A DNA stretch of 63,486 nucleotides, the filler included, from Pelomyxa schiedti (Eukaryota > Protista > Evosea), in NCBI GenBank assembly GCA_020536535.1. It is 4 parts of 4 records of this genome, joined end to end, with 100 filler letters (N's around TTAATTAATTAA, not from the genome) between each part and the next. Parts side by side here need not be neighbours in the genome. Positions count along the whole stretch, not along the records: positions 57,671 to 63,486 come from JAHLWZ010001469.1; 3 more parts are not named here. The stretch is one strand, 5' to 3'. Both the position numbers and the translations under genes were made by a program. The notes beneath the pieces were generated by a model, which did not search any database, had not been told where the DNA came from, and saw only the letters and a program-made list of their open reading frames with translations. This document shows, piece by piece, positions 2,301-63,486 of the stretch; within the stretch, counting starts at the first letter, position 1; every line of letters begins with the position of its first letter.

Positions 2301-4340
2301 GTCTATCAGATTTGCAGTTGGAACTTGGGGGAGAAAAAAGAACAACAAAAAAAAATGGATGTGGATGTTGCAAACAGAGAACAGAGCCAGCAATCAAGCA
2401 AGTTATCCATGCCCTCATCTTCTCTGTAGGCAACCTAATCCAGAGAACATGAGTGGCAGCATTGGGGCCTTTTGATTTCCAGCTGGCCTGGTATATTTCT
2501 TCTTTTTCCCAGTTACTAGGTGATGGACTTGCCCAGCTGAGGTAAATGCTCCCATCCCTTCGCCATCACACCACTGAATAGGTACCCCAGATTGGCAGAC
2601 TGGCTGTGTCACCAGAACATCACAGGGTCTCCACAGCATTGCATACACCCATCCTTTCTGCATTTACAGCACCGGTATGTTTATTTAGGTTGTGGAATTT
2701 CTGGCTGGATGCCACTAAACATACAGTCTCCTTTTTATAATCACCCCAACCCCACTCAGCAATCATAGTTACCTCACTCAGCCAGACTTCCACTGACACT
2801 CACCCCCCTGCACATCTCCCTCCATCTCCACCACTGTGATTCCAAGGAAGAAACTGACAATTTGGAGCACGAGCCAATCCCAGTGCTTTAACAATGGAAA
2901 AAAGAAAATTTTTTCCCTGAGGTTGATTTTTGACTTCAGGCCTGGGCACATTAGGGGGGAGAAGTGGACTCTGGTGTGTTGGAGCACAGATGTGAGATAG
3001 TGTGTAGTATTGGAGTGGCAAGAGAGGGGGAGGTGGAAGGTGGAAGCCCCAGGCACTCAATTCGTCAGTCCTTCTTAAATCCCTGGTACCTGTTGAGTGG
3101 GGGTATGATAAAAGGGAGAGGGGATGTACATTGGTGATAGGTCTCTGCTCCAAAACCAGTAAGTTGCCACCTAAATAATATTATCTGTGAGACTGGAGCA
3201 AATAAAAAAGAAGGAGTCACCTACCCACCGGAAATGCACCGGAAATGCATTTTCAGCACAAGTTGAGTGCGGGAACAAGAAAAAAAAAAAGCCTGGGATT
3301 GGAAGTGAGGAAATACTGGGGAGACAATGCAGGTGCAAACCTGACGAAAAGCGGAGCAGAGCAGTACATCATTCCGTCAGTCTGGGCTACTTATTCTATC
3401 ATGTTTGAGTGGGGTGAGGATGGAAAGGGAGAGGAGATGTACCATGGCAAGTCCAGCACCTACTGTACAAGGTGAAATGAGAAAAATAAGAAATAAGAAA
3501 CATACCAGTGAGCTGCTGGAAGTCAAAAGGGCCCCAATGTCAGCACTCTCACTGCATGTAGGTTGAATACAGGAAAGTACCTAGAGATTGGAGGTGAGTA
3601 TATTGGGGACTAAAAGAAGAGGAATACCGGAGGAATGGAGCCGAGCTGCATGCACATTCTTCTGGGTGTGCACCTGCTTTTGCCTCCAGGTCTCCCTATT
3701 CCTGTCTGCCTCTCAACGAATCTCTAAAATACCACCTGGTTATAAAATGTGAGAACTTGAAAAATAAAAACAGAGAAGATAAATGGAAACCTACAACTGT
3801 ACCCACGTCTCCACATCAGTATCTTCAATGACTGTATTGATGTGAGAACAAGAACAAAAACAAAACGAAATAAAACAAACTTAAACCTTAAATAATTACT
3901 TATCTGAAATATAAAAAAATATGGACTCAGGTGTCTAAATCAAAGAAAATTAATTTAAACAAGAAAGGAAGAAACCATACCGACGACAGAGCCCTCTTGG
4001 AATTGAAAGGCCGAAACTGTGAAGTATGAGATGAAGAGGAAAACTGGCAATAAGTGGAGTGCATACATCAAGCACATGAAACACCGGCATGGTGAACCCA
4101 AACCATCGATTTTTTTGTTTTTTTCCTTTTTCCTCCCCAATACCAACCGCAAACAAACAACCCCTCCCAAGAAAACACTGCCACCTCCAGTTTTTTGTCC
4201 GTGGTTTTTCCCAAATTTGGGGCTTCATGCCTGACTAAATGAAGGCCTCATTCTCATCACATTTGATGGAAAATTGAACAAACATGTGTGTTTGGACAAA
4301 TGTTGCTTAGTTTTGGTCATTGTTGGTTTTTCTCACTTGC

Positions 4341-7809: not shown

Positions 7810-9213
7810 ATGGCGTACTGTCAATTTCCCCCCGTTGTAACTAGAAAATTGAATTATTTACTCATGGGACTGTACGAATCGGTCAGCACCCCACAGGGCA
7901 CAGAAACCACAAGCCCCAGCTTGGAGGACACCACCCCGAGCGCCTCCACACGCGTCACGTCGCCCAGTAGAGAGCCCCCGGCGCAGCGGCCCCCTCCCTG
8001 CTGCGCGCTGGTGTCTTCGTGCTGGGGGCACGGGATCGCCGGGACATACTGCAACGCCGACTCCTGGGTGTGCGCCGTGTTCAACGTGGTGCCCCGCTGC
8101 CCCGAGGAGGCCTCGCCCTCGCTCCCGTCCCCGCCTCTGAGCGCGCCCAGGGTCACGGGGGTCGTGTCCCACGTGCGCGGCCCCCGCTCCCACTGCTTGT
8201 GTGCCACCTTGCTGTTTTGTGGGCTGCATCCGGCCGCAGAGGCCCCCGGTGGTCCTAAGTGCCAGCAGGGACTCTGCATTGGGGTGATTAGGACTCAGGA
8301 CGGGGGAGCGAGGGAGCTGCTGGAGGTGTGGGCATTCCGGGGCAAAGTGCCAGAGGGGCGTAAAGGGGGGGACGAAGTGGGAACAGTGGTGTTGGATTCC
8401 GAGGGGAATGGGTGGCAGTTGGAATACAGCTTGTTGCTGGGGTCGGAGGGCAGGGCGTTTGGGCTGTACTGGTTCGACAGCGGCGGCGACGGTGGAATTT
8501 TGTCGGCATTCTGGACGAGCAAGACGAGGAAAGTGGTAGCCAAAATCGAGGTGAGAACCCACCCCGGAAGTGCTCCGGAGTATTCGGGTGAAGTCAAGGA
8601 GTGCTGTGTTGAAATAGAACCTTGTGTAACTGTTGCTGTGTCAGTCACTGGGGGGAAAGACCGCAGCACTGGCAAACCCTTGGCAGTGTGTCTCTTGTTT
8701 TTCCAAGGGTACCAGAGCCCCATTTTAGCCAGATATGACCCGGTGGCACTGGAATTCCTTCCAGAACCACTTTTAAAGCTTCCAAAGTACTCACACGGCA
8801 CACTGGATGGGAGCAGCATGATTTTCTACTCACACCAGCCTCTTGGGGACCTCATGACTGTGGACTGCTGTGCACCAACGGGAGGGTTACAGCTCTCCGA
8901 TACCAAACCCAACAAGACAAACACCTGGCATTCTTCCAAAGCACGGGACTTCACCTGCCCCAAATTTTCGTGCTGGAGTGGATACTTTGCACTGGGATCC
9001 TGCCGGCAAGTTTTTGTTTGGCAGGTCACTGACTGGCGGCTGTGTGCACGATGGGAGGCTCCCAGTGATACATGGGGACTGATTACTGCAGTGCACGTAT
9101 TGCCAAATACAACAAGAATTCTGCTGTGCTTTCACCATGCCTTCACAGCCCGGGCTCACACTTTCCACCTGTTGGACTGGTCAAATTTTGGTGTTGTGCA
9201 GCTAGACCTTTGA
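7810..9213 (+). CDS. Intronless hypothetical protein (467 aa), beta-rich, possibly propeller-like
   Basis: Long uninterrupted ORF; C-terminal WD-like strands (QVFVWQVTDW, FHLLDW). Confidence 0.7.
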   Translation: MAYCQFPPVVTRKLNYLLMGLYESVSTPQGTETTSPSLEDTTPSASTRVTSPSREPPAQRPPPCCALVSSCWGHGIAGTYCNADSWVCAVFNVVPRCPEEASPSLPSPPLSAPRVTGVVSHVRGPRSHCLCATLLFCGLHPAAEAPGGPKCQQGLCIGVIRTQDGGARELLEVWAFRGKVPEGRKGGDEVGTVVLDSEGNGWQLEYSLLLGSEGRAFGLYWFDSGGDGGILSAFWTSKTRKVVAKIEVRTHPGSAPEYSGEVKECCVEIEPCVTVAVSVTGGKDRSTGKPLAVCLLFFQGYQSPILARYDPVALEFLPEPLLKLPKYSHGTLDGSSMIFYSHQPLGDLMTVDCCAPTGGLQLSDTKPNKTNTWHSSKARDFTCPKFSCWSGYFALGSCRQVFVWQVTDWRLCARWEAPSDTWGLITAVHVLPNTTRILLCFHHAFTARAHTFHLLDWSNFGVVQLDL

Positions 9214-9285
9214 GCCTTTTTATGGTTTATGGCACAAACTAAAACAGTGAAACAAAATGAAGTTATTTATTTATGTTCTTTTTTT

Positions 9286-12200
9286 TTACGGCCTCATTTT
9301 CTGTGATAACCAGTCAAGGCCCTCATACAATCCATCACCAGTAAGTGCACAACACCCCTGTATTCTCCAGTTCTTGTGTGACATTGATGGGAGAGATTCG
9401 ACCCCCATCAACTGCGCAACTTCACCAACGGCAAGGCCGCCAGGTAAATCCTGTTTGTTGGCTGTGTATTTATGTGTAGTAATAGTGGAAAAGTGTCAGA
9501 TGACTTGAAGTATACAATATTGTTGGTACCAAACACAAGAACAGGGACGCCGGTTAATGCGTCTTCAGACACTATCTGTTTTTGTTGTCATTAACCAAAT
9601 AAAGGAATGGAGGAAAACTCGCCTTCATAAATTCCTCTCTGGCATCGGGCATTCTAAGACTTACTTACAAATAGAACAGGTGGGGAAATTAAGTACCTTT
9701 CAAGGTCTGAGGAGTCGGCAACAAAAATCAGAGCATTTGTCACTTGGTAATCTATTTCGGTGTTTGGATTTAGAGCGGGCAGATAATGGGGACCGTACAA
9801 TGACGCCACAGTGGTCGAATTTTATCCTCTTATGGTAAGCAGTTAGAATGAGGATTTTAGCATTCAGTGAAATTCATACCACCACCAACATCCTATCATT
9901 GACTGAGAGAGGACTAAAAGAAAAAAGATCATACCCAAACAGTGATAGAAATGTTTTTGTAGGTGACAGTTTCGACATCTTTAATCCCAAATAAGAAGTT
10001 TACAATGACATGCGGCTACATACTGAAGCCAATAGTTGGTATGGTTGTTTCAACTTCCCCAAGTTTGAGTTTATAAAGAATCGTGGTTTTCCCTGGGAGA
10101 GAGTGAAAATGTGTGAATAGCACCAATGATTACCAACAGCATCCAGGCCAAGAATAAGAATCCGTTGTTGCGGAGACCGAAAGAAAAGTGATTTGCCGAT
10201 CCAAGAAAAGGTAGATGACACAATTGAGGAAAAGGTAGAAGTCCCATTCCCTTTAGCAGCAGACCTGACTGTGGTGAGTGTAGGAGAAGCTTGATTGTTG
10301 TAACATACTCATTACCGCTTTCAAAAAATTGCTTTGCAAAAAATTTGTTCTTACCCCAGGCAGTACCGAGTAAGGTCTTCCAATTTCCTGTATAACTGTA
10401 ATTCATACTAAGAAAAATTATGATCAACGTGAAAGGCACTTACCTGTCTGGTGAAAGTCCAGCAAGGCGCATTGATCTTTGTATTCTTGTACTCCAGTTT
10501 TGTTTTATGTACAGCTCTTTCCACAATTCATTATCTGTTGACAAAAGGTAGAGAGCACGGCAAGTCGATGATACGCGGCAAAGACTTTGTACATCCAAAT
10601 AGAGAAATATATCTCTGCATGGTTTTGTAAATCAATGAAGACTGGAGCTGGAAAAGATACTTGAACACAGCTGGGGGAAGGCCACTGAAAGTGCCTGTCA
10701 AACATTAACATGCATATGCTTTTGAATTTACAAGTACCACAGGAAAACTTTGAAGAGGAGAGTGGAGGAATGCTGTGGGTCCCTGTGGTCGAAGAAATAT
10801 GCCCAATGCAACTGCTTGATGCCCAGCCACATGCAATGAAGGTGACTACAACTCCTTCCAGACCCTGCACCCTCTCTGGGATATTTCTATCAGATGTATC
10901 ACCAAGACCTAGATGTAGCTCATCAGAAAAACCTCTTCGTGGAGCGGATATGATACCAAGCTGGCCACATCCGTTGGCCCCAAAACTGAACAAGACGTTT
11001 GCCTTGGTTAGGGCAAGTGAGTGAGCAATGCCGCCTGAGCCTCCTGCTGCCACTTTAACAACGTCCGACTTAAAGTGGGATACGAGGGTGGGTGTGGAGC
11101 GTTTAGTATTGTCACCAAGCCCAAGTTCACCATGCCTAATTCATATATAAGTGAAACTGGCAGATTTGATTTGCGGCCAATACACGTTTGCCCCAAAGGA
11201 AAATAATTGCCCTGCTTCATCAATAACAAGAGAATGTGCATCCCCGCAAGAGAGATCTTTCACTTTGGAGTCACAGAAGAAGTTCACAAATTTTGGTAAT
11301 CTTTCAGAAACCTGGAAAAATAAGTACATTTTCAGATGATGGAAGACTACTTCCTCCCTGTGACCTGAGGAGAATCAATGGAACTCATACTTCAACAACT
11401 GCACTTACCAAGTTGCCCTTGAAGGCCACATCCCCAAGAATACAGGTGTCCAAGAGAATCAATTGCAAGAGAGTGATGGCCTCCAGCACTGGCTTGAACA
11501 ATCCTGACGCCGCTTTCAAAGGTGCATCGAGTGATGTATACCGCTCTGAATGAAGAGATTATATCCCTGAGACTTCACCCCATAAGGTTGTACTTTTCGT
11601 CATAGGAACTAATTCCAAGCTGGCCATGATCATTGATCCCCCATGCATATAACTCCCCATTGGCCTGACACACCAGAACATGACTTCTTCCAGCAGATAC
11701 ACATCTCACACCTGATCCTGTTATTCAGGTCAGGACAAACCCCGTAGGCGTGCTATTTGAACCGAAATACTGGTGTTGAGGTCTACATAAGGAGAAGCTA
11801 GAACCATCAAGTGCCGCTTGTCTGAAAATCCTGTCCTCCACAAAGTTCATTGTCTGTGGCAGTAGGCCAGTTGCACACCAAGTCATATCCTCAGTGCACG
11901 CAACCCTGGCATTCCAATTGAGTTCGAAAAGCTAATACAAGTCACGTGGCACACAAGATACTTCCAGTTGCCATAACAAGTCTCGTTGGAGGAGATGACT
12001 CTGGCCCACCCCAAGTGTATAACTCTCCCTCACATACGGCAGCCATATGCCTAAGTGATGGGAACAAAACCTTGTGAGTCACTCAAAAACCTACTGACGC
12101 TTCGTACGTTGAGCCACATGCCACGGCTGTTAGGCCTCTCAGCCCTGGAACTTCAGCAGGTGTTGTTTGAATATCCTAAACCCAACAAGAAATGCCAGAG

Positions 12201-57626: not shown

Positions 57627-57756
57627 NNNNNNNNNNNNNNNNNNNNNNNNNNNNNNNNNNNNNNNNNNNNGAAGCTTCCCTTTGCCAGCAAACGACCATA
57701 TATATGGAGTTTTGCCTGATTTTTTCCCCAGGGCGATTTAGGTTTTAGTGCTCTAC

Positions 57757-59253
57757 TCAAAGAGTGTAGGAAAAGGAGGAGCCACCTGAGACTGGGGATT
57801 TGCACAAAAGTCTGAGAATTGTGATTCCTGATGCTTCTTCAATCAGGTCAACTGCTGTATGGTCACCAAGCATGGTGAGGTGGATGAGGAGCCCACCGTC
57901 TGCCCACCACACACCAATGCCAGAGTCAGGGTGTTGTATGTTCCTCAGTGGGCCTGCAGTGTTGTTGCAGTCCCATATCTCGGTGATTGAGCCAGGAACT
58001 GTGGATGTAAACCTGCTGACACAAAACAGTGTGCTGTTGAGCTGGGACAAGCCGATAACTGCTTCAGCCAGTTCTTTGACACAGTGGTGGCTGTTGTGGT
58101 CTTCCACGAGTGCCAAAATGGTGATTCCACTGCTCTTTTCTGCTGTGACAAGGAATACAGGCACACCACCGTGATCCTTGAAAGCAAGTAGCAATGCCTT
58201 CCTCTTGAAAGAAAAGGAGTAATCAGAGGGCATGGTCCATTCCCGTGAGCTTGTAGAAGTGACAGACCTCGTTGCATAGAGATTTGGCACATCGACTGTG
58301 ACAACTGATATTTGAGCGCACTGCTCACCTAGTCCCTGAAGCAGAAACAGTGCCTCATCAGGTGACATTGTGTTGCTGAATGCAATTCTACGCACCGCAC
58401 GGGCAGGAAAACTATCGGGACGTGTGAGAACAGGAGGCACTGGGTCCCGAAGGTCCGCCACCTGGAGAGTAGTGCCCCAGCCATTGCACACCCACCACCT
58501 GTGGTTGAACGCACAGCGCGAGTACTGGCCAGGAAGCCAGTGCTGGGAAACCATCACCTCCTGTCCCGTGGCGGTGCTCTTCACGCTGTACCCCTCCGCC
58601 ATGACACTGCTGTTTACCTGCAGCACCCAGCTGCGGTTCTGAGACAGCGCCAGTGCCGCGACAGTGTTCTTCACAGGGCACCAGCACCCCACTCCACCGC
58701 CACAACCACAACCACCACCATCATCATTGCTGACCAGTGCACCAAGGGTAACAGGATGGAGAGCAAATGTAACCAGTGCACCAGCACTAACCAACCCTCC
58801 TTCTTTGTGGTTTGTTGTGTCCAGCACCACGTTGAAGTGCCTCGCTGGGACGCCCCGGCACCAGTCCCACAATGTCTTCACCACCGCGTGGGGGCACTGC
58901 CCCGCGCCGCCGGCGTCGGCGTCGCGGTCGTCGGCCGCGGCGTGGCGCAGCGGGCTGCGGGCGCCGCACCGCGGGATCGTGGAGGCCGCCGACAGCGCGA
59001 GGAACTGGGCGCGGAGGCCGACGGGGGGTTGTACGGCCACCACCAGCGCGGGGGATGCTGCCTGGAATGTAATGCCACTTGAAGCTTCGACGTCGCTCTG
59101 GATCTTGGCCCGGGCCTCGTTCATGCTCTGCAACGTGCTCATTGAGTGGTTTCTTAGAAGACTAAGGTTCGGAGTGGGATTGGGATTGGGATTGTGATAC
59201 AACATGTTGTGCCTACGCGTACAAGGCTGATAACCCGGTGTGCACAGGCCCAA
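57757..59253 (-). CDS. Intronless lineage-specific protein with RAQFLAL..PRCGARSP motif, beta-rich C-terminus
   Basis: 498-codon ORF; the true start may be MSTLQS (~59142). Confidence 0.75.
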   Translation of the reverse strand: MGLCTPGYQPCTRRHNMLYHNPNPNPTPNLSLLRNHSMSTLQSMNEARAKIQSDVEASSGITFQAASPALVVAVQPPVGLRAQFLALSAASTIPRCGARSPLRHAAADDRDADAGGAGQCPHAVVKTLWDWCRGVPARHFNVVLDTTNHKEGGLVSAGALVTFALHPVTLGALVSNDDGGGCGCGGGVGCWCPVKNTVAALALSQNRSWVLQVNSSVMAEGYSVKSTATGQEVMVSQHWLPGQYSRCAFNHRWWVCNGWGTTLQVADLRDPVPPVLTRPDSFPARAVRRIAFSNTMSPDEALFLLQGLGEQCAQISVVTVDVPNLYATRSVTSTSSREWTMPSDYSFSFKRKALLLAFKDHGGVPVFLVTAEKSSGITILALVEDHNSHHCVKELAEAVIGLSQLNSTLFCVSRFTSTVPGSITEIWDCNNTAGPLRNIQHPDSGIGVWWADGGLLIHLTMLGDHTAVDLIEEASGITILRLLCKSPVSGGSSFSYTL

Positions 59254-59302
59254 ATGATTCGGTCAATCAAATTTGTGTTTATCTGATATCTACAAGAAGG
59301 AA

Positions 59303-60301
59303 ATGAGTGTTGTGACGGTGAGGCAGATAACGGTGCTGGACAACCCCGCCAAATTCACGGACCCATTACGGTTTGACATAATATTCGATTGCTTGCGTGA
59401 CATCCCTGGTTGTTCTTCGTTTTTTTTTTTGTTTTTTCGTTTGTTGGTTGTGAATCACGACAATTATTATAATACGTAGGATTGCTTGTATACTGTAATG
59501 TGGATGACATTCACTAATACAAACAAACGCTAATACAACAAACAACTCTAGAACTAGAGTGGAAAATTGTGTATGTTGGTAGTGCCGAAACACAGGAAAA
59601 GGACCAAGTACTCGCTTGTGAACCACTTGAGTCTGTCCCTGCTGGTCCGAGCCATTTCATTTTCGAGGTGATTTGAGTGATTATTTTGGATTCAAACGAA
59701 ACCAATCCAAATACTATGTAGGCTGATCCACCGGATCCAGCTCAAATTCCAACCAACGAGTTGTTAGGACTCACTGTTTTACTGTACTTTTCCTTCACAA
59801 TGGCTTACCTGCTTTTCTGATTTTTCCTCTAGAATAACATGCACTTACCTCCGGCAAGAGCTGATACGAGTTGGATATTTCGTGTACAACGAATATGACA
59901 CCCAAGAAATGAGAATGACCCCGCCACCAACACCCGACGTATCACACATCATGCGGAACGTTTGGGCTGATAAGCCCCGGGTCACGCACTTCCCGATGAT
60001 GTGGGACCTGGACCAACAAGTGATACGCGATCTGGATGGCGTCGCAATCCCACCTCCATCACTTGCTTCCAGCACCACAACACTTACCGGAACAAATCAG
60101 AGCACCACACGGCCATCAGCGGAAACAGCAGCACCAGTTGTAGGAGGGATTGTATCCTGCGGAACTGAGAATGTGTTTTTGCCACTGCACATTCCCGGCG
60201 TGGATGCACTATCAGGAGACTTGTATGTGCCACAAAACCCACAAACAAACCATCCTGCAACTGGAGAAGATGACGACAGTGATGCCGAAATAGACAGCTA
60301 A
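59303..60301 (+). CDS. ASF1: Histone H3/H4 chaperone ASF1 (4 exons)
   Basis: MSVVTVRQITVLDNPAKFTDPLRFDIIFDC..LEWKIVYVGSAE..DQVL..ADPPDP..LLGLTVLLITCTY..IRVGYFVYNEY..KPRVTHF. Confidence 0.95.
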
Positions 60302-60397
60302 GGCATTGATAACAACTCGAGTTATTATCCACCACAGAACACCAGGAATTCAAACAACCAGAATCAAAATCAATAAATACATTCATCATTTCGGCTG

Positions 60398-61729
60398 ATG
60401 GACGAAAGAGTACTGAGGCAGGTGCTGTTGTGGCTGAGGGACTGGGACCTGGTCAATGCATCATGTGTGTCCCATCAAGTGTGTTTGTATTCCATTGAAT
60501 AGAGTGTGTATTTGATAATAACTAAATGGCAACCCTTGCCTGTTTTTTTTAGTCTGTGTGCACACAACGGTTAACGATGACATAATAACAAATAAATAAA
60601 TGAATGAAGTGGAGGAGAATTGCCAAGAGTGTTGGACCATGTTGCCCACCGTGTGTGGCTGTCTATTCTCATGCTGATTATTTTGGTGTTGGTGATGGTG
60701 GTGTTCTGGACCTGAGGGGATACATTGACAGAGGGAAGCCAGGGAGTGTGGTGGTCACTGAGAATGTGAGGTATGGCCATGTGTGTTGCTGTTGCTCTGG
60801 TCCGGCTCCTGGCAAGGAATTCTTCGTTGTTCAGCATGCTCCTTTGAGCAGAGTAACAACAGCAATGGAACAGGCTCAGGGTGGAATCTTGTCACGGATT
60901 ACACGCAGCATCAGCAGCAGAGAGCCACTGAAGTTTAGGTAAGAAGTATTAACTACTTTTCTGTTGTGTTAAGTTTTAATATTCCTGCAGGGTACTCTCC
61001 TATGGATCTGACATTGGGGGAACCCTTATGTATCATCTGAAGGTAACTCATTGACTTTTGTTATGTCTCCAAGAGAATTGTAAAACAGGATTTTCGGATC
61101 ATATCAGAAGAAGATGAGATGTATCACTGTGCAAGAATTCCATGGGACCTCTGTGGCCAAAAAGTAATTTTTTCAATATGGGGTGTGTTGTTGCTGTGAT
61201 TGAACCGCCTTAATTTTGCTTAAATTAGGAGCCGACCAATCTGACGATTGGGTACCTCTTCTTCCCTGTGATGCTGTGATCTACCTTTCCAATAATTATA
61301 CAACGTGAGAGTTATCTTCTCTTATACCATTCTGCTCATACAATTCCTCAGCCCTTCCAGTGTGGACCTCCACCATTTTGTAAACTCTGTCAGTCCCACG
61401 AAGCTTGTCCCTGTTTTGGTTTTGGGTATGAAAAAAACACCTCAATACCAAATACTCACCACCTTCCAATAGCATCAGACCAACAATATGCCAGTCTCAA
61501 CCGGACTACCCACGAGGTTGCAGCAGCACTGGACATGCACGGCATCAAATGCACAGCATGGAGGGTTCAGGGATACACACAACAAAGAGGCCGGGATCAA
61601 ATCACAAGCCCCACTCTGGCCAAGGGCCTCAGCTGGCTGGCGAGGCAACTGTTCTTGGCAGCAATGGACCCACATTGGCCAACTTCAAACATCAACCACA
61701 ACACCTCCACTGTGCCCACAAGGTTGTAG
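60398..61729 (+). CDS. F-box protein with a C-terminal degenerate Arf-like domain, multi-exon
   Basis: F-box MDERVLRQVLLWLRDWDLVNASCVSHQ|WRRIA; Arf-like KFR|VLSYGSDIGGTLMYHLK..CDAVIYL..VPVLVL..AWRVQG..LAKGLSWLARQL. Confidence 0.65.
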
Positions 61730-61835
61730 AAACCAACTTATTGTTTTTTTTTTTGTTCCTCTCAATCAACATCAAACAACCATCACTGCTTTTCATGTAC
61801 GGTAAATGTGCTGAATGATTACACTGAGTAAGAAC

Positions 61836-63128
61836 TCATTCAGTGTAGCAGGTGAAGGGCACTGTGTTGATCGTGATAGTTACAATGGCACGTTTAGTGT
61901 GGCGGAATGTGAGCACGTGTATGCCTGTTCTTGCGTCTATTATTGTGTGAAGTGAACACTCCCTGGGAGTGTGTGTTTGATTGGGGAGGATTTCTTCAAT
62001 GAGGGGTGTTGAATCCTCAACAACAAAGCCACACCCAACAGTCACCAGTGTGGTGCCTATTGGATGCACATGAACCAAACTCGGTTCAGATGGACTGGAG
62101 CAGAAGGGATTGAAGATGGCAGTTTTGTCGTTGCTGGTGATAGCGAGGTGTGAGTCATCTACTCTACGGCAACAGTTGGAAGCTTCTTCCATCCATGTGA
62201 TGAATTTACCTGTGTTAAAGTGGAACAGTTGTACGGTCTGTGAGCATGGGTTGTTAGGTACAGGGATTTGAAAGGGGAAGTAGTACTGCCTTTCTGGGCT
62301 TTGTTGGACAAGGCACAGTGAGAACGTGGTCAAATTTGGGTTGGTGCACTCTATTGCATTTGCATTTGATATGGTTCCTCCTTCTGCCATTGCTTTGATT
62401 AAATCCACCTGCAGTATACACACGTGGTTGCCCTTATGCCCTTTTTGGCTGTACATCACCTCAATGAAGTCGCTCTCCACAGTGTATTCATTTCCCCCAT
62501 AGAACCTTACATCCAAAGGATGCTCGATCCATGGGCAAATGAAAGCCTTCTCGTCTCCCTGAGGAAGACTTCCAACCACCCTCCACACATGAATCATGGT
62601 CTCAGAGTCTCCCCTCCCCCCACTGATGATGACAATCCACCTCTTGTTGCAACAAGGACGATTCCTTATTGACGCCATAACTTGTAGCCACTTTGGCAAT
62701 GACGTGTCGACAACGCTGAATCCGTGGGAATCAAAGGGGGCGCGGTGGCCGATGACTCTGTGGACAACGCAGTTGTTTCCCCCAAGCCAGCCAAAAAGAG
62801 GGCGCGGGGTCCAGACCGGCACAGGCCCTACGAGAATTCCAAGGGTGTGGGATACGGAGAAGAAAATGCGGTCTTCTAACCCGGAAACAGATCGAAGAGA
62901 GAAGGTGATGCAGATGTTTCTCTCAGGCCTCAGTACCCAGGCCTTCCCAACGAGGTCTGTTATCACGGCCGACGGCAGTCGGCCGACAAAACACAGTGAC
63001 GACGGATCTTGGCCCTCCGCGGACTTACTAGGCGACCAAGCACCACACGCGAAGGCGATGAATTGGCTCTTGGCATCAATTCCCTGCGTCACGTCTACGG
63101 CCGCGACTTCACGAGAGCGTCGCATCAC
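61836..63128 (-). CDS. Intronless lineage-specific protein (430 aa) with IDAKSQFIAFACG motif
   Basis: Long ORF; N-terminal motif, SHTLGI, NKRWIV and terminal IIDARTG are shared with the 49773 gene. Confidence 0.75.
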   Translation of the reverse strand: MMRRSREVAAVDVTQGIDAKSQFIAFACGAWSPSKSAEGQDPSSLCFVGRLPSAVITDLVGKAWVLRPERNICITFSLRSVSGLEDRIFFSVSHTLGILVGPVPVWTPRPLFGWLGGNNCVVHRVIGHRAPFDSHGFSVVDTSLPKWLQVMASIRNRPCCNKRWIVIISGGRGDSETMIHVWRVVGSLPQGDEKAFICPWIEHPLDVRFYGGNEYTVESDFIEVMYSQKGHKGNHVCILQVDLIKAMAEGGTISNANAIECTNPNLTTFSLCLVQQSPERQYYFPFQIPVPNNPCSQTVQLFHFNTGKFITWMEEASNCCRRVDDSHLAITSNDKTAIFNPFCSSPSEPSLVHVHPIGTTLVTVGCGFVVEDSTPLIEEILPNQTHTPRECSLHTIIDARTGIHVLTFRHTKRAIVTITINTVPFTCYTE

Positions 63129-63486
63129 GAGAGATTTTTTCTTTTTCTTTTCATAAGTTGGCCGATGGGAGGGTGATGATTCCGAAGTTCGGGTGTTTCA
63201 CCAGGTAGGTTGTCTCTAATAAATGCATCGCGGTCTCTTATAACACCACCGAGAGGATTAGTGTTCATTATCCTCTTATTCCTGTCCCACAATTCAACAG
63301 ACAAGCCAGGGGTTTATTATCGACCAGTTGAAAAAGAAGAAATTCAACTTTTTTACAAGTGGACATCATTTGTGTCGCAAGACAGTTTTATTAAACTGTT
63401 TACACCCGCAAAGCGTGGTGCGGTCTCTGGCAAATATTCCTTTGCTTGGTGGCCGTTTTTGAAAAACAAAAAAAAAACGTATCTAC

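Follow-up and report, generated by a model that had tools for sequence, protein, structure and literature searches.

Here, we report that a gene at positions 60398-61729 of a DNA window from Pelomyxa schiedti, an anaerobic free-living amoeba (Archamoebae, Amoebozoa), encodes an F-box joined, through a Cys-rich linker of roughly 100 residues, to a degenerate Arf1-derived G domain with a short conserved tail. At least three paralogs scattered through this genome derive from one ancestral F-box-Arf fusion gene, and among them this gene has diverged the furthest. The window is the whole stretch of DNA (63,486 nucleotides, filler included); the part of it that carries the gene, positions 57671-63486, is an entire 5,816-bp contig of assembly GCA_020536535.1. 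The architecture and paralogy of the gene are established almost beyond doubt, and its product is, with high confidence, predicted to be without canonical nucleotide binding. Taken as a whole, the best explanation, to which we give a probability of roughly 0.6, is that this is a dead F-box-Arf paralog, linked to Skp1-cullin-F-box (SCF) ubiquitin ligases and carrying a frozen switch.

Gene model and transcript support

Reading of the three forward frames across positions 60380-61760 gave a seven-exon gene on the plus strand with a product of 320 amino acids. All six introns are of the GT..AG type and measure 46-131 nt, the first being the longest (131 nt), and an in-frame TAA is located seven codons 5' of the ATG. 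A search of 1.84 billion proteins with exon 7 alone retrieved the public P. schiedti protein KAH3731411.1 ("hypothetical protein Pelo_17759"; here P0121), which is 100% identical over the exon. This protein is identical to the gene model, and threading it onto the window DNA gave exactly the seven exon coordinates listed below; the public protein, not our own joined exon model, was used in the full-length analyses. The first-pass annotation of the window had placed an F-box-Arf gene at 60398-61729, which is correct to the base, and the strings that it quoted are all present, in Arf order and in one spliced frame. The exons and the two sequence elements discussed below are as follows.

60398..60478, plus strand: exon 1, start codon and first half of the F-box (residues 1-27; Pfam F-box 19.0 bits)
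60610..60938, plus strand: exon 2, F-box residues 28-36, Cys-rich linker, remnant of the Arf N-terminal helix (about residues 106-132) and start of strand β1
60775..60840, plus strand: family-specific block GHVCCCC...E-F-F-V-V-Q-H-A, residues 83-104, the best-conserved part of the protein
60991..61042, plus strand: exon 3, strand β1 and degenerate P-loop (GSDIGG--T)
61089..61182, plus strand: exon 4, degenerate switch I (Thr equivalent is Glu164) and β2-β3 hairpin
61143..61163, plus strand: WDLCGQK, look-alike of the G3 motif, residues 173-179, in a hairpin turn
61229..61304, plus strand: exon 5, degenerate G3/switch II (GADQS for D-V-G-G-Q, with a 4-residue deletion) and strand β4 (CDAVIYL)
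61352..61425, plus strand: exon 6, helix α3 and strand β5 (VPVLVL), with both flanking introns confirmed by RNA
61473..61729, plus strand: exon 7, G4 remnant SDQQ, helix α4, strand β6 (AWRVQGY), helix α5 (GLSWLARQL), tail, and stop codon at 61727-61729

Contigs from four public runs, all of one study, were compared over positions 59200-61900. Two DNA-like runs (library kind unrecorded) contain this stretch without any joint. A single-cell RNA-seq contig of 183 nt, with a depth of 2.7, lacks 61305-61351 and 61426-61472, each bounded by GT..AG, so that the last two introns of the gene are seen spliced in RNA and the exon 5 donor at 61304/61305 is confirmed. RNA of the gene is present, at low depth, in one of the two RNA runs, and no RNA contig over exons 1-4 was found among the contigs of these two runs.

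A family of F-box-Arf paralogs with a common exon plan

The phmmer search with exon 7 also retrieved two proteins encoded on other P. schiedti contigs, P0123 (KAH3756218.1, 332 aa, E = 7e-13) and P0125 (KAH3756947.1, 348 aa, E = 1e-10), and in the 1.84 billion representative proteins it found no relative outside P. schiedti at E<=1e-3. GenBank labels both of these paralogs 'ADP-ribosylation factor 1' and the dead copy 'hypothetical protein'. Three other candidate relatives (P0122, P0124 and P0126) were rejected as long repetitive proteins in which the scores sum short repeated stretches. End-to-end BLASTP alignments of P0121 gave 3e-48 with 33% identity to P0123, and 1e-42 with 30% identity to P0125. 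Both paralogs share with P0121 the F-box, a Cys-rich linker with GHVCCC..VQHA, the Arf domain and a tail with NIN..T.P; unlike P0121, they retain most G motifs, and their Arf domains are recognized by Pfam.

All three genes have seven exons, with the six introns at homologous positions and in phases 0,2,0,1,2,1. Exon 2 is one continuous open reading frame that takes in the second half of the F-box and reaches the first strand of the G domain, and so the fusion does not hinge on the chaining of exons. The joint between exons 1 and 2 is supported by the rise in F-box score across it, from 19.0 bits for exon 1 alone to 25.8 bits when exon 2 is joined, and by the identical phase-0 split in both paralogs, which falls after the 27th or 31st codon. 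The exons are thus not those of separate genes, the outcome that the first-pass annotation had named as counting against it: exon 2 bridges the F-box and the G domain, and the seven-exon plan is common to the three paralogs.

In a maximum-likelihood tree, canonical Arfs separate from the three paralogs (100/98). P0121 sits on a saturated terminal branch with a length of 10, versus 0.71 and 3.51 for the paralogs; this branch is not placeable, and no branching order was drawn. Of the wider claims made for the gene at first pass, that of an F-box-Arf family stands to the extent of at least three dispersed P. schiedti paralogs and of the F-box+ARF proteins listed in other Amoebozoa. That of an independent fusion does not hold with respect to P0123 and P0125, with which the gene goes back by duplication to a single ancestral fusion; nor does the count of two members in 63 kb carry any weight as a hint of frequency, because the window is joined from unrelated pieces.

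Homology and fold of the Arf-type G domain

By standard tools, the Arf claim for P0121 taken alone is weak. Single exons gave no match to Pfam Arf (PF00025) at E<=10, and exon-by-exon Pfam analysis gave only half an F-box, on exon 1. A word search with exons 7 and 2 returned none, a blank that is weak because its length window of 0.55-1.75x excludes a 320-aa protein. The ESM Atlas, queried with exon 7 and with residues 37-135, gave no usable match, and none that explains the linker, and a PDB sequence search with exon 2 found nothing.

The paralogs supply the first line of evidence for homology. Their Pfam Arf domains score 1.7e-39 and 135.5 bits (P0123) and 2.7e-33 and 115.3 bits (P0125), and the closest PDB match of P0123 is Arf1, at 8e-40. 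As a second line, P0121 was aligned directly by hhalign with 39 Arf1/6-type proteins, which gave a probability of 90% and an E-value of 1.5e-6 over 161 columns, with residues 119-296 falling on Arf positions 3-178. This set of 39 was collected by a word search seeded with an Arf of a giant virus that a DNA pattern scan had picked out; the seed is a complete and canonical 175-aa Arf on the metagenome contig IMG/VR GVMAG-S-1041352-47 (2585-3112, minus strand), retains GKT, DVGGQ and NKTD, and was used for this purpose only. In a phmmer search of PDB sequences with P0121, the first seven places were taken by Arl3, with a top E-value of 1.3e-3, and with exon 7 alone Arl2 was among the top matches in the PDB. 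Against a local Arf hidden Markov model (HMM), exon 7 scored 10.4 bits at profile positions 135-177 (E = 1e-4, for 7 exon pieces), and the exon pieces were collinear on the profile: exon 3 at 29-37, exon 4 at 65-78, exon 6 at about 113 and exon 7 at 135-177.

The third line of evidence is the fold. An AlphaFold2 model, for which the three paralogs and three Arfs were aligned in six rows, has a predicted local distance difference test (pLDDT) score of 65-80 over residues 131-310, where the elements follow the order β1-α1-β2-β3-(α2)-β4-α3-β5-α4-β6-α5. Exons 3-4 contribute a strand at 134-142, a helix at 146-155 and strands at 168-175 and 178-187, and exon 6 a helix at 212-224 and a strand at 231-237. 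A Foldseek search of this model against the PDB returned top matches that were all Arf/Arl, with an E-value of 6e-8 and TM-scores by target of 0.55-0.71. Because the Arf rows could have biased this model, a control was built from the three paralogs only; its mean pLDDT is 43, its order of strands and helices is identical, and in Foldseek its every match was a G domain, with Arf/Arl among the best. The Arf fold, on which the first-pass annotation had staked its case beforehand, is thus what hhalign, the PDB sequence search, and AlphaFold2 with Foldseek all point to. With the paralogs, the direct tests and the fold in agreement, the Arf homology of the P0121 domain is secure.

The Arf helix remnant is internal in P0121 (about residues 106-132), behind the F-box and the linker, and neither the N-terminal Gly2 myristoylation site nor the N-terminal amphipathic helix of Arfs is present.

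Loss of the GTPase motifs

The 37 columns that are invariant among the 39 Arfs were mapped onto the family alignment; P0121 retains 10/37 of these, compared with 29/37 in P0123 and 26/37 in P0125. The G1 motif of P0121 reads G142-S-D-I-G-G147, followed by a 2-residue deletion at the Lys-Thr of GxxxxGK[ST] (K30/T31), and the switch I Thr (T48) is replaced by E164. At G3 (DxxGQ), the residues D67, G70 and Q71 have become G186, Q189 and S190 (GADQS, followed by a 4-residue deletion), in the register that the paralogs and intron 4 set. At G4 (NKxD), N126, K127 and D129 have become S237, D238 and Q240. The loss of GKT and NKQD read at first pass is therefore borne out, in that Lys-Thr is deleted and SDQQ occupies the NKQD columns, and it extends to G3 and the switch I Thr. 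The motifs of the paralogs and of canonical Arfs are as follows.

Canonical Arf: G1 GK-T; switch I Thr; G3 DxxGQ; G4 NKxD
P0123: G1 GRT; switch I Thr; G3 ExxGQ; G4 SKQD
P0125: G1 GKT; switch I Thr; G3 DxxG retained, with Gln changed to Gly; G4 AKQD

Thus, both paralogs are non-canonical and far less degenerate than P0121, and as judged by their motifs the family appears to span a series from near-competent to dead. Since G1, the switch I Thr, G3 and G4 are all lost, we infer that P0121 is a pseudoGTPase, which would be unable to bind or hydrolyse GTP in the canonical way.

A second stretch of P0121, WDLCGQK, resembles the WDVGGQDK of Arfs and was aligned with it as the G3 motif in one MAFFT alignment. 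This assignment was rejected on four grounds: the paralogs read IPWRIGKNK and IPWKHLGYE at this place; exon 4 is 94 nt long in the window gene and 97 nt in both paralogs, and so within one codon; exon 4 ends ...IW^ at the common phase-1 intron in all three genes; and both AlphaFold2 models put WDLCGQK in the β2-β3 hairpin. The true, degenerate G3 site lies 12 residues downstream. WDLCGQK drives the local HMM, hhalign, the PDB search and the one MAFFT alignment toward the wrong register, and this counsels caution: the strongest direct similarity of the protein to Arf is a look-alike in the wrong structural place.

Uneven conservation along the protein

Identity between P0121 and its paralogs differs from one part of the protein to another.

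GHVCCCC..VQHA block, residues 81-105: 58-62%
C-terminal tail (D..W...NIN...T.P): 42-46%
F-box: 34-50%
C-terminal half of the G domain (AWRVQGY invariant): 33-40%
Switch half of the G domain: 24-29%

In the block, G83, H84, V85, C86, C87, C88, E97, F99, Q102, H103 and A104 are invariant in the family, and the consensus of the trio is GHVCCC(C/S)..E(F/W/Y)F.VQHA; no family or ESM Atlas match explains it. The tail, which is likewise specific to the family, follows helix α5 and reads DPHW..SNIN...T.P in P0121. The reading frame and all splice sites of P0121 are intact. This uneven conservation suggests that selection has acted on surfaces other than the nucleotide pocket.

The F-box

The F-box is the handle by which proteins join SCF ubiquitin ligases. 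In KAH3731411.1, the N-terminal F-box already read at first pass was recovered by Pfam (PF00646) with 25.8 bits (E = 9.2e-6), above the cut-off of 20.5, and the match places residues 4-36 on positions 7-39 of the 43 in the profile, across the junction of exons 1 and 2. The scores within the trio are 25.8 bits for P0121, 26.7 for P0123 and 18.5 for P0125, and nine F-box residues are invariant in the family (L6, R7, V9, L13, D17, L18, A21, V24 and W28). The motif is real; Skp1 binding by the window protein, as predicted from it, is not assured, since the match leaves out the first positions of the profile, where the Leu-Pro that touches Skp1 lies, and this Leu-Pro is missing from all three paralogs.

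Neighboring genes

A spliced ASF1 histone-chaperone gene lies upstream at 59304-60301 (plus strand; annotated with 250 aa, with Pfam ASF1_hist_chap on its last exon); just 96 nt separate its stop codon from the ATG of the downstream F-box-Arf gene, and its 3' exon is covered by RNA contigs of both RNA runs. The locus is flanked by two annotated minus-strand genes, at 57757-59205 (466 aa) and 61836-63128 (381 aa), neither of which has a Pfam match; that they are paralogs of each other was considered and rejected (BLASTP E = 7), and they look like lineage-specific orphans. On the P0125 contig, the second gene downstream, about 1 kb past P0125, encodes a UCH-type deubiquitinase of 716 aa (8432-11087, plus strand). 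This may be chance, and no ubiquitin-related neighbors were found at the loci of P0121 and P0123.

Discussion

By analogy with F-box proteins in general, the F-box of P0121 would attach the protein to the Skp1 of an SCF ubiquitin ligase, and the remainder would select a target or a location, with the Arf-fold domain, the CCCC block and the tail forming a putative partner- or membrane-binding module. Through the Arf domain, ubiquitination might be tied to membranes or to partners of Arf, in analogy with TRIM23 and along the lines argued for F-box/BTB+ARF fusions (Vargová et al., 2021; PMC8358228). In the less degenerate paralogs, nucleotide may still gate binding, comparable to the coupling between Arf domain and E3 part in TRIM23. 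In the dead copy the switch would be frozen, making of the protein a constitutive adaptor, or a decoy competing with its paralogs for Skp1 or for targets. We put this adaptor-or-decoy mechanism forward tentatively, at somewhat less than even odds.

The CCCC block is possibly an S-palmitoylation or metal site. Our guess is that the invariant Cys run, which lies directly ahead of the amphipathic helix remnant, would be S-palmitoylated and would take the place of the N-myristoyl anchor, impossible in a fusion protein, by analogy with other Arf-family proteins (Vargová et al., 2021; PMC8358228). More speculative, and in our estimate improbable, is the specific version in which the dead copy serves as a nucleotide-independent SCF receptor, or decoy, that mimics one conformational state of Arf. 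Its frozen Arf fold would then capture a guanine nucleotide exchange factor, a GTPase-activating protein or a coat adaptor for ubiquitination, or shield them from the paralogs.

Several observations weigh against a functional, SCF-linked pseudoGTPase. Some of them concern the domain itself, in that Pfam Arf (PF00025) finds no match in KAH3731411.1 at E<=1 and that AlphaFold2 confidence is moderate, with a mean pLDDT of 55 and 43 in the two models and values <50 over residues 1-101. Others bear on whether the gene is under constraint at all. The P0121 terminal branch is saturated; RNA evidence is sparse, a single contig of depth 2.7 that extends over exons 5-7 only; and all three coding differences between runs are nonsynonymous. 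These differences between the window and the contigs of the other runs lie at 61253, 61294-61295 and 61503, namely V194G in both DNA-like runs, N208S in one run and R246Q in the RNA contig, and could be alleles, differences among nuclei of the multinucleate cell, or amplification errors. Together, the saturated branch, the nonsynonymous differences and the thin RNA fit relaxed constraint.

The most probable of the alternatives is that the window gene is a decaying duplicate, still transcribed and with an open frame, which drifts without a role of its own. We consider this unlikely. In its favor are the branch lengths (10 vs 0.71 and 3.51), the loss of 27/37 invariant Arf positions, the finding of RNA in one of two RNA runs at low depth, and the distribution of the run differences, three of three being nonsynonymous in the gene and none occurring in the ASF1 part of the compared stretch. 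However, a frame of 320 codons is intact over seven exons, and the six introns keep GT..AG and their phase, with two of them seen correctly spliced. Drift that erases every G motif should also hit conserved blocks and the frame, yet the block has kept 58-62% identity and the tail 42-46%, with AWRVQGY and the F-box retained, as against 24-29% in the switch half, and the run differences may be single-cell amplification errors. The constraint numbers are too small to decide between selection and decay.

A further alternative, also doubtful, keeps a function and removes the ligase: P0121 would be a membrane pseudoGTPase, anchored by its poly-Cys run and with a degenerate F-box, that sequesters or scaffolds Arf regulators without SCF. 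The conserved Leu-Pro at the start of the F-box motif, which in the consensus falls in the part before profile position 7, is the contact with Skp1. The F-box match begins at position 7 of 43, Leu-Pro is missing in all three paralogs (residues 1-3 of P0121 are M-D-E), and the PF00646 scores of 25.8, 26.7 and 18.5 bits are modest. Moreover, the CCCC run stands beside the amphipathic helix remnant and is invariant in the family, and membrane attachment through an S-palmitoylated Cys close to the G domain is known for Arf-family proteins (PMC8358228). Against this, two of the three paralogs pass the curated Pfam cut-off for the F-box, the nine family-invariant F-box residues suggest that the motif is under selection, and the recurrence of F-box+ARF and BTB+ARF fusions in several lineages fits a link to ubiquitin ligases. 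Least probable by far is an annotation chimera of separate F-box and Arf-like genes: exons 1-4 are without an RNA contig and intron 1 is the longest, but the single open reading frame of exon 2, the higher F-box score of exons 1 and 2 joined, the phase-0 split common to the paralogs and the end of ASF1 only 96 nt 5' of the ATG leave it next to no room.

The dead F-box-Arf paralog that we favor belongs to an architecture with recorded precedents. F-box+ARF architectures have already been catalogued in Amoebozoa, in a survey outside which P. schiedti falls (Vargová et al., 2021; PMC8358228). Its Supplementary Table 1 lists F-box+ARF proteins from Physarum (PpoArlX5) and Acanthamoeba (AcaArf1i, AcaArf1l and AcaArlX2). 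The same survey records RCC1 or Kelch together with an F-box(-like) domain and Arf in Mastigamoeba, Acanthamoeba and Thecamonas, the RCC1 + F-box-like + Arf proteins being MbaArf1e/f, AcaArf1g and TtrArlX1. It notes that F-box+ARF and BTB+ARF fusions recur in several lineages, and its authors read these proteins as ARF members recruited into ubiquitin circuits (PMC8358228). Like P0121, the catalogued F-box+ARF proteins have the F-box N-terminal to an Arf-family G domain; none of them is described as being without all G motifs. When compared by eye only, PpoArlX5 is of similar size to P0121 and shares strings such as LP.DGVI and PWRVQ, but it has no CCCC block and no NIN tail, and its GKS P-loop is retained.

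TRIM23/ARD1 also resembles P0121 in having an E3-ligase module N-terminal to an Arf1-derived G domain (PMC8358228). It is a metazoan RING-B-box-coiled-coil E3 ligase with a C-terminal Arf domain, and differs from P0121 in that its module is RING/TRIM and not an F-box and that its Arf domain is near canonical Arf1 and binds nucleotide. TRIM23 is restricted to Metazoa, so that TRIM23 and the F-box-Arf fusions arose independently. PseudoGTPases of other kinds include CENP-M and the pG domains of p190RhoGAP. In these the fold is retained, the G motifs are lost and a role as scaffold or interaction module is presumed, a pattern that P0121 would share as far as its sequence predicts. We know of no described pseudoGTPase that is both Arf-derived and attached to an F-box, and a search of the literature brought up no study of one, or of a protein like P0121. 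The fusion type being already recorded in amoebae, only the dead version is new, and the novelty is modest.

Seen more widely, the gene adds a paralog, specific to its lineage, to an architecture already on record, in an amoeba that has been little studied. Because the Pfam Arf model misses the dead copy, which is labelled 'hypothetical protein', domain counts that rely on Pfam only are too low and under-count degenerate members of the Arf family. F-box+ARF fusions have so far only been listed in a survey, with none studied, and the three P. schiedti paralogs, at three stages of G-motif loss, offer a natural series for the use of the Arf fold in a ubiquitin ligase and for how a molecular switch becomes a pseudoenzyme. 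If the receptor-or-decoy reading of the dead copy is true, P0121 would be the first Arf-derived pseudoGTPase wired to a ubiquitin ligase, and the trio of GKT-intact, partly degenerate and dead copies would be a series leading from a GTPase switch to a fixed recognition module.

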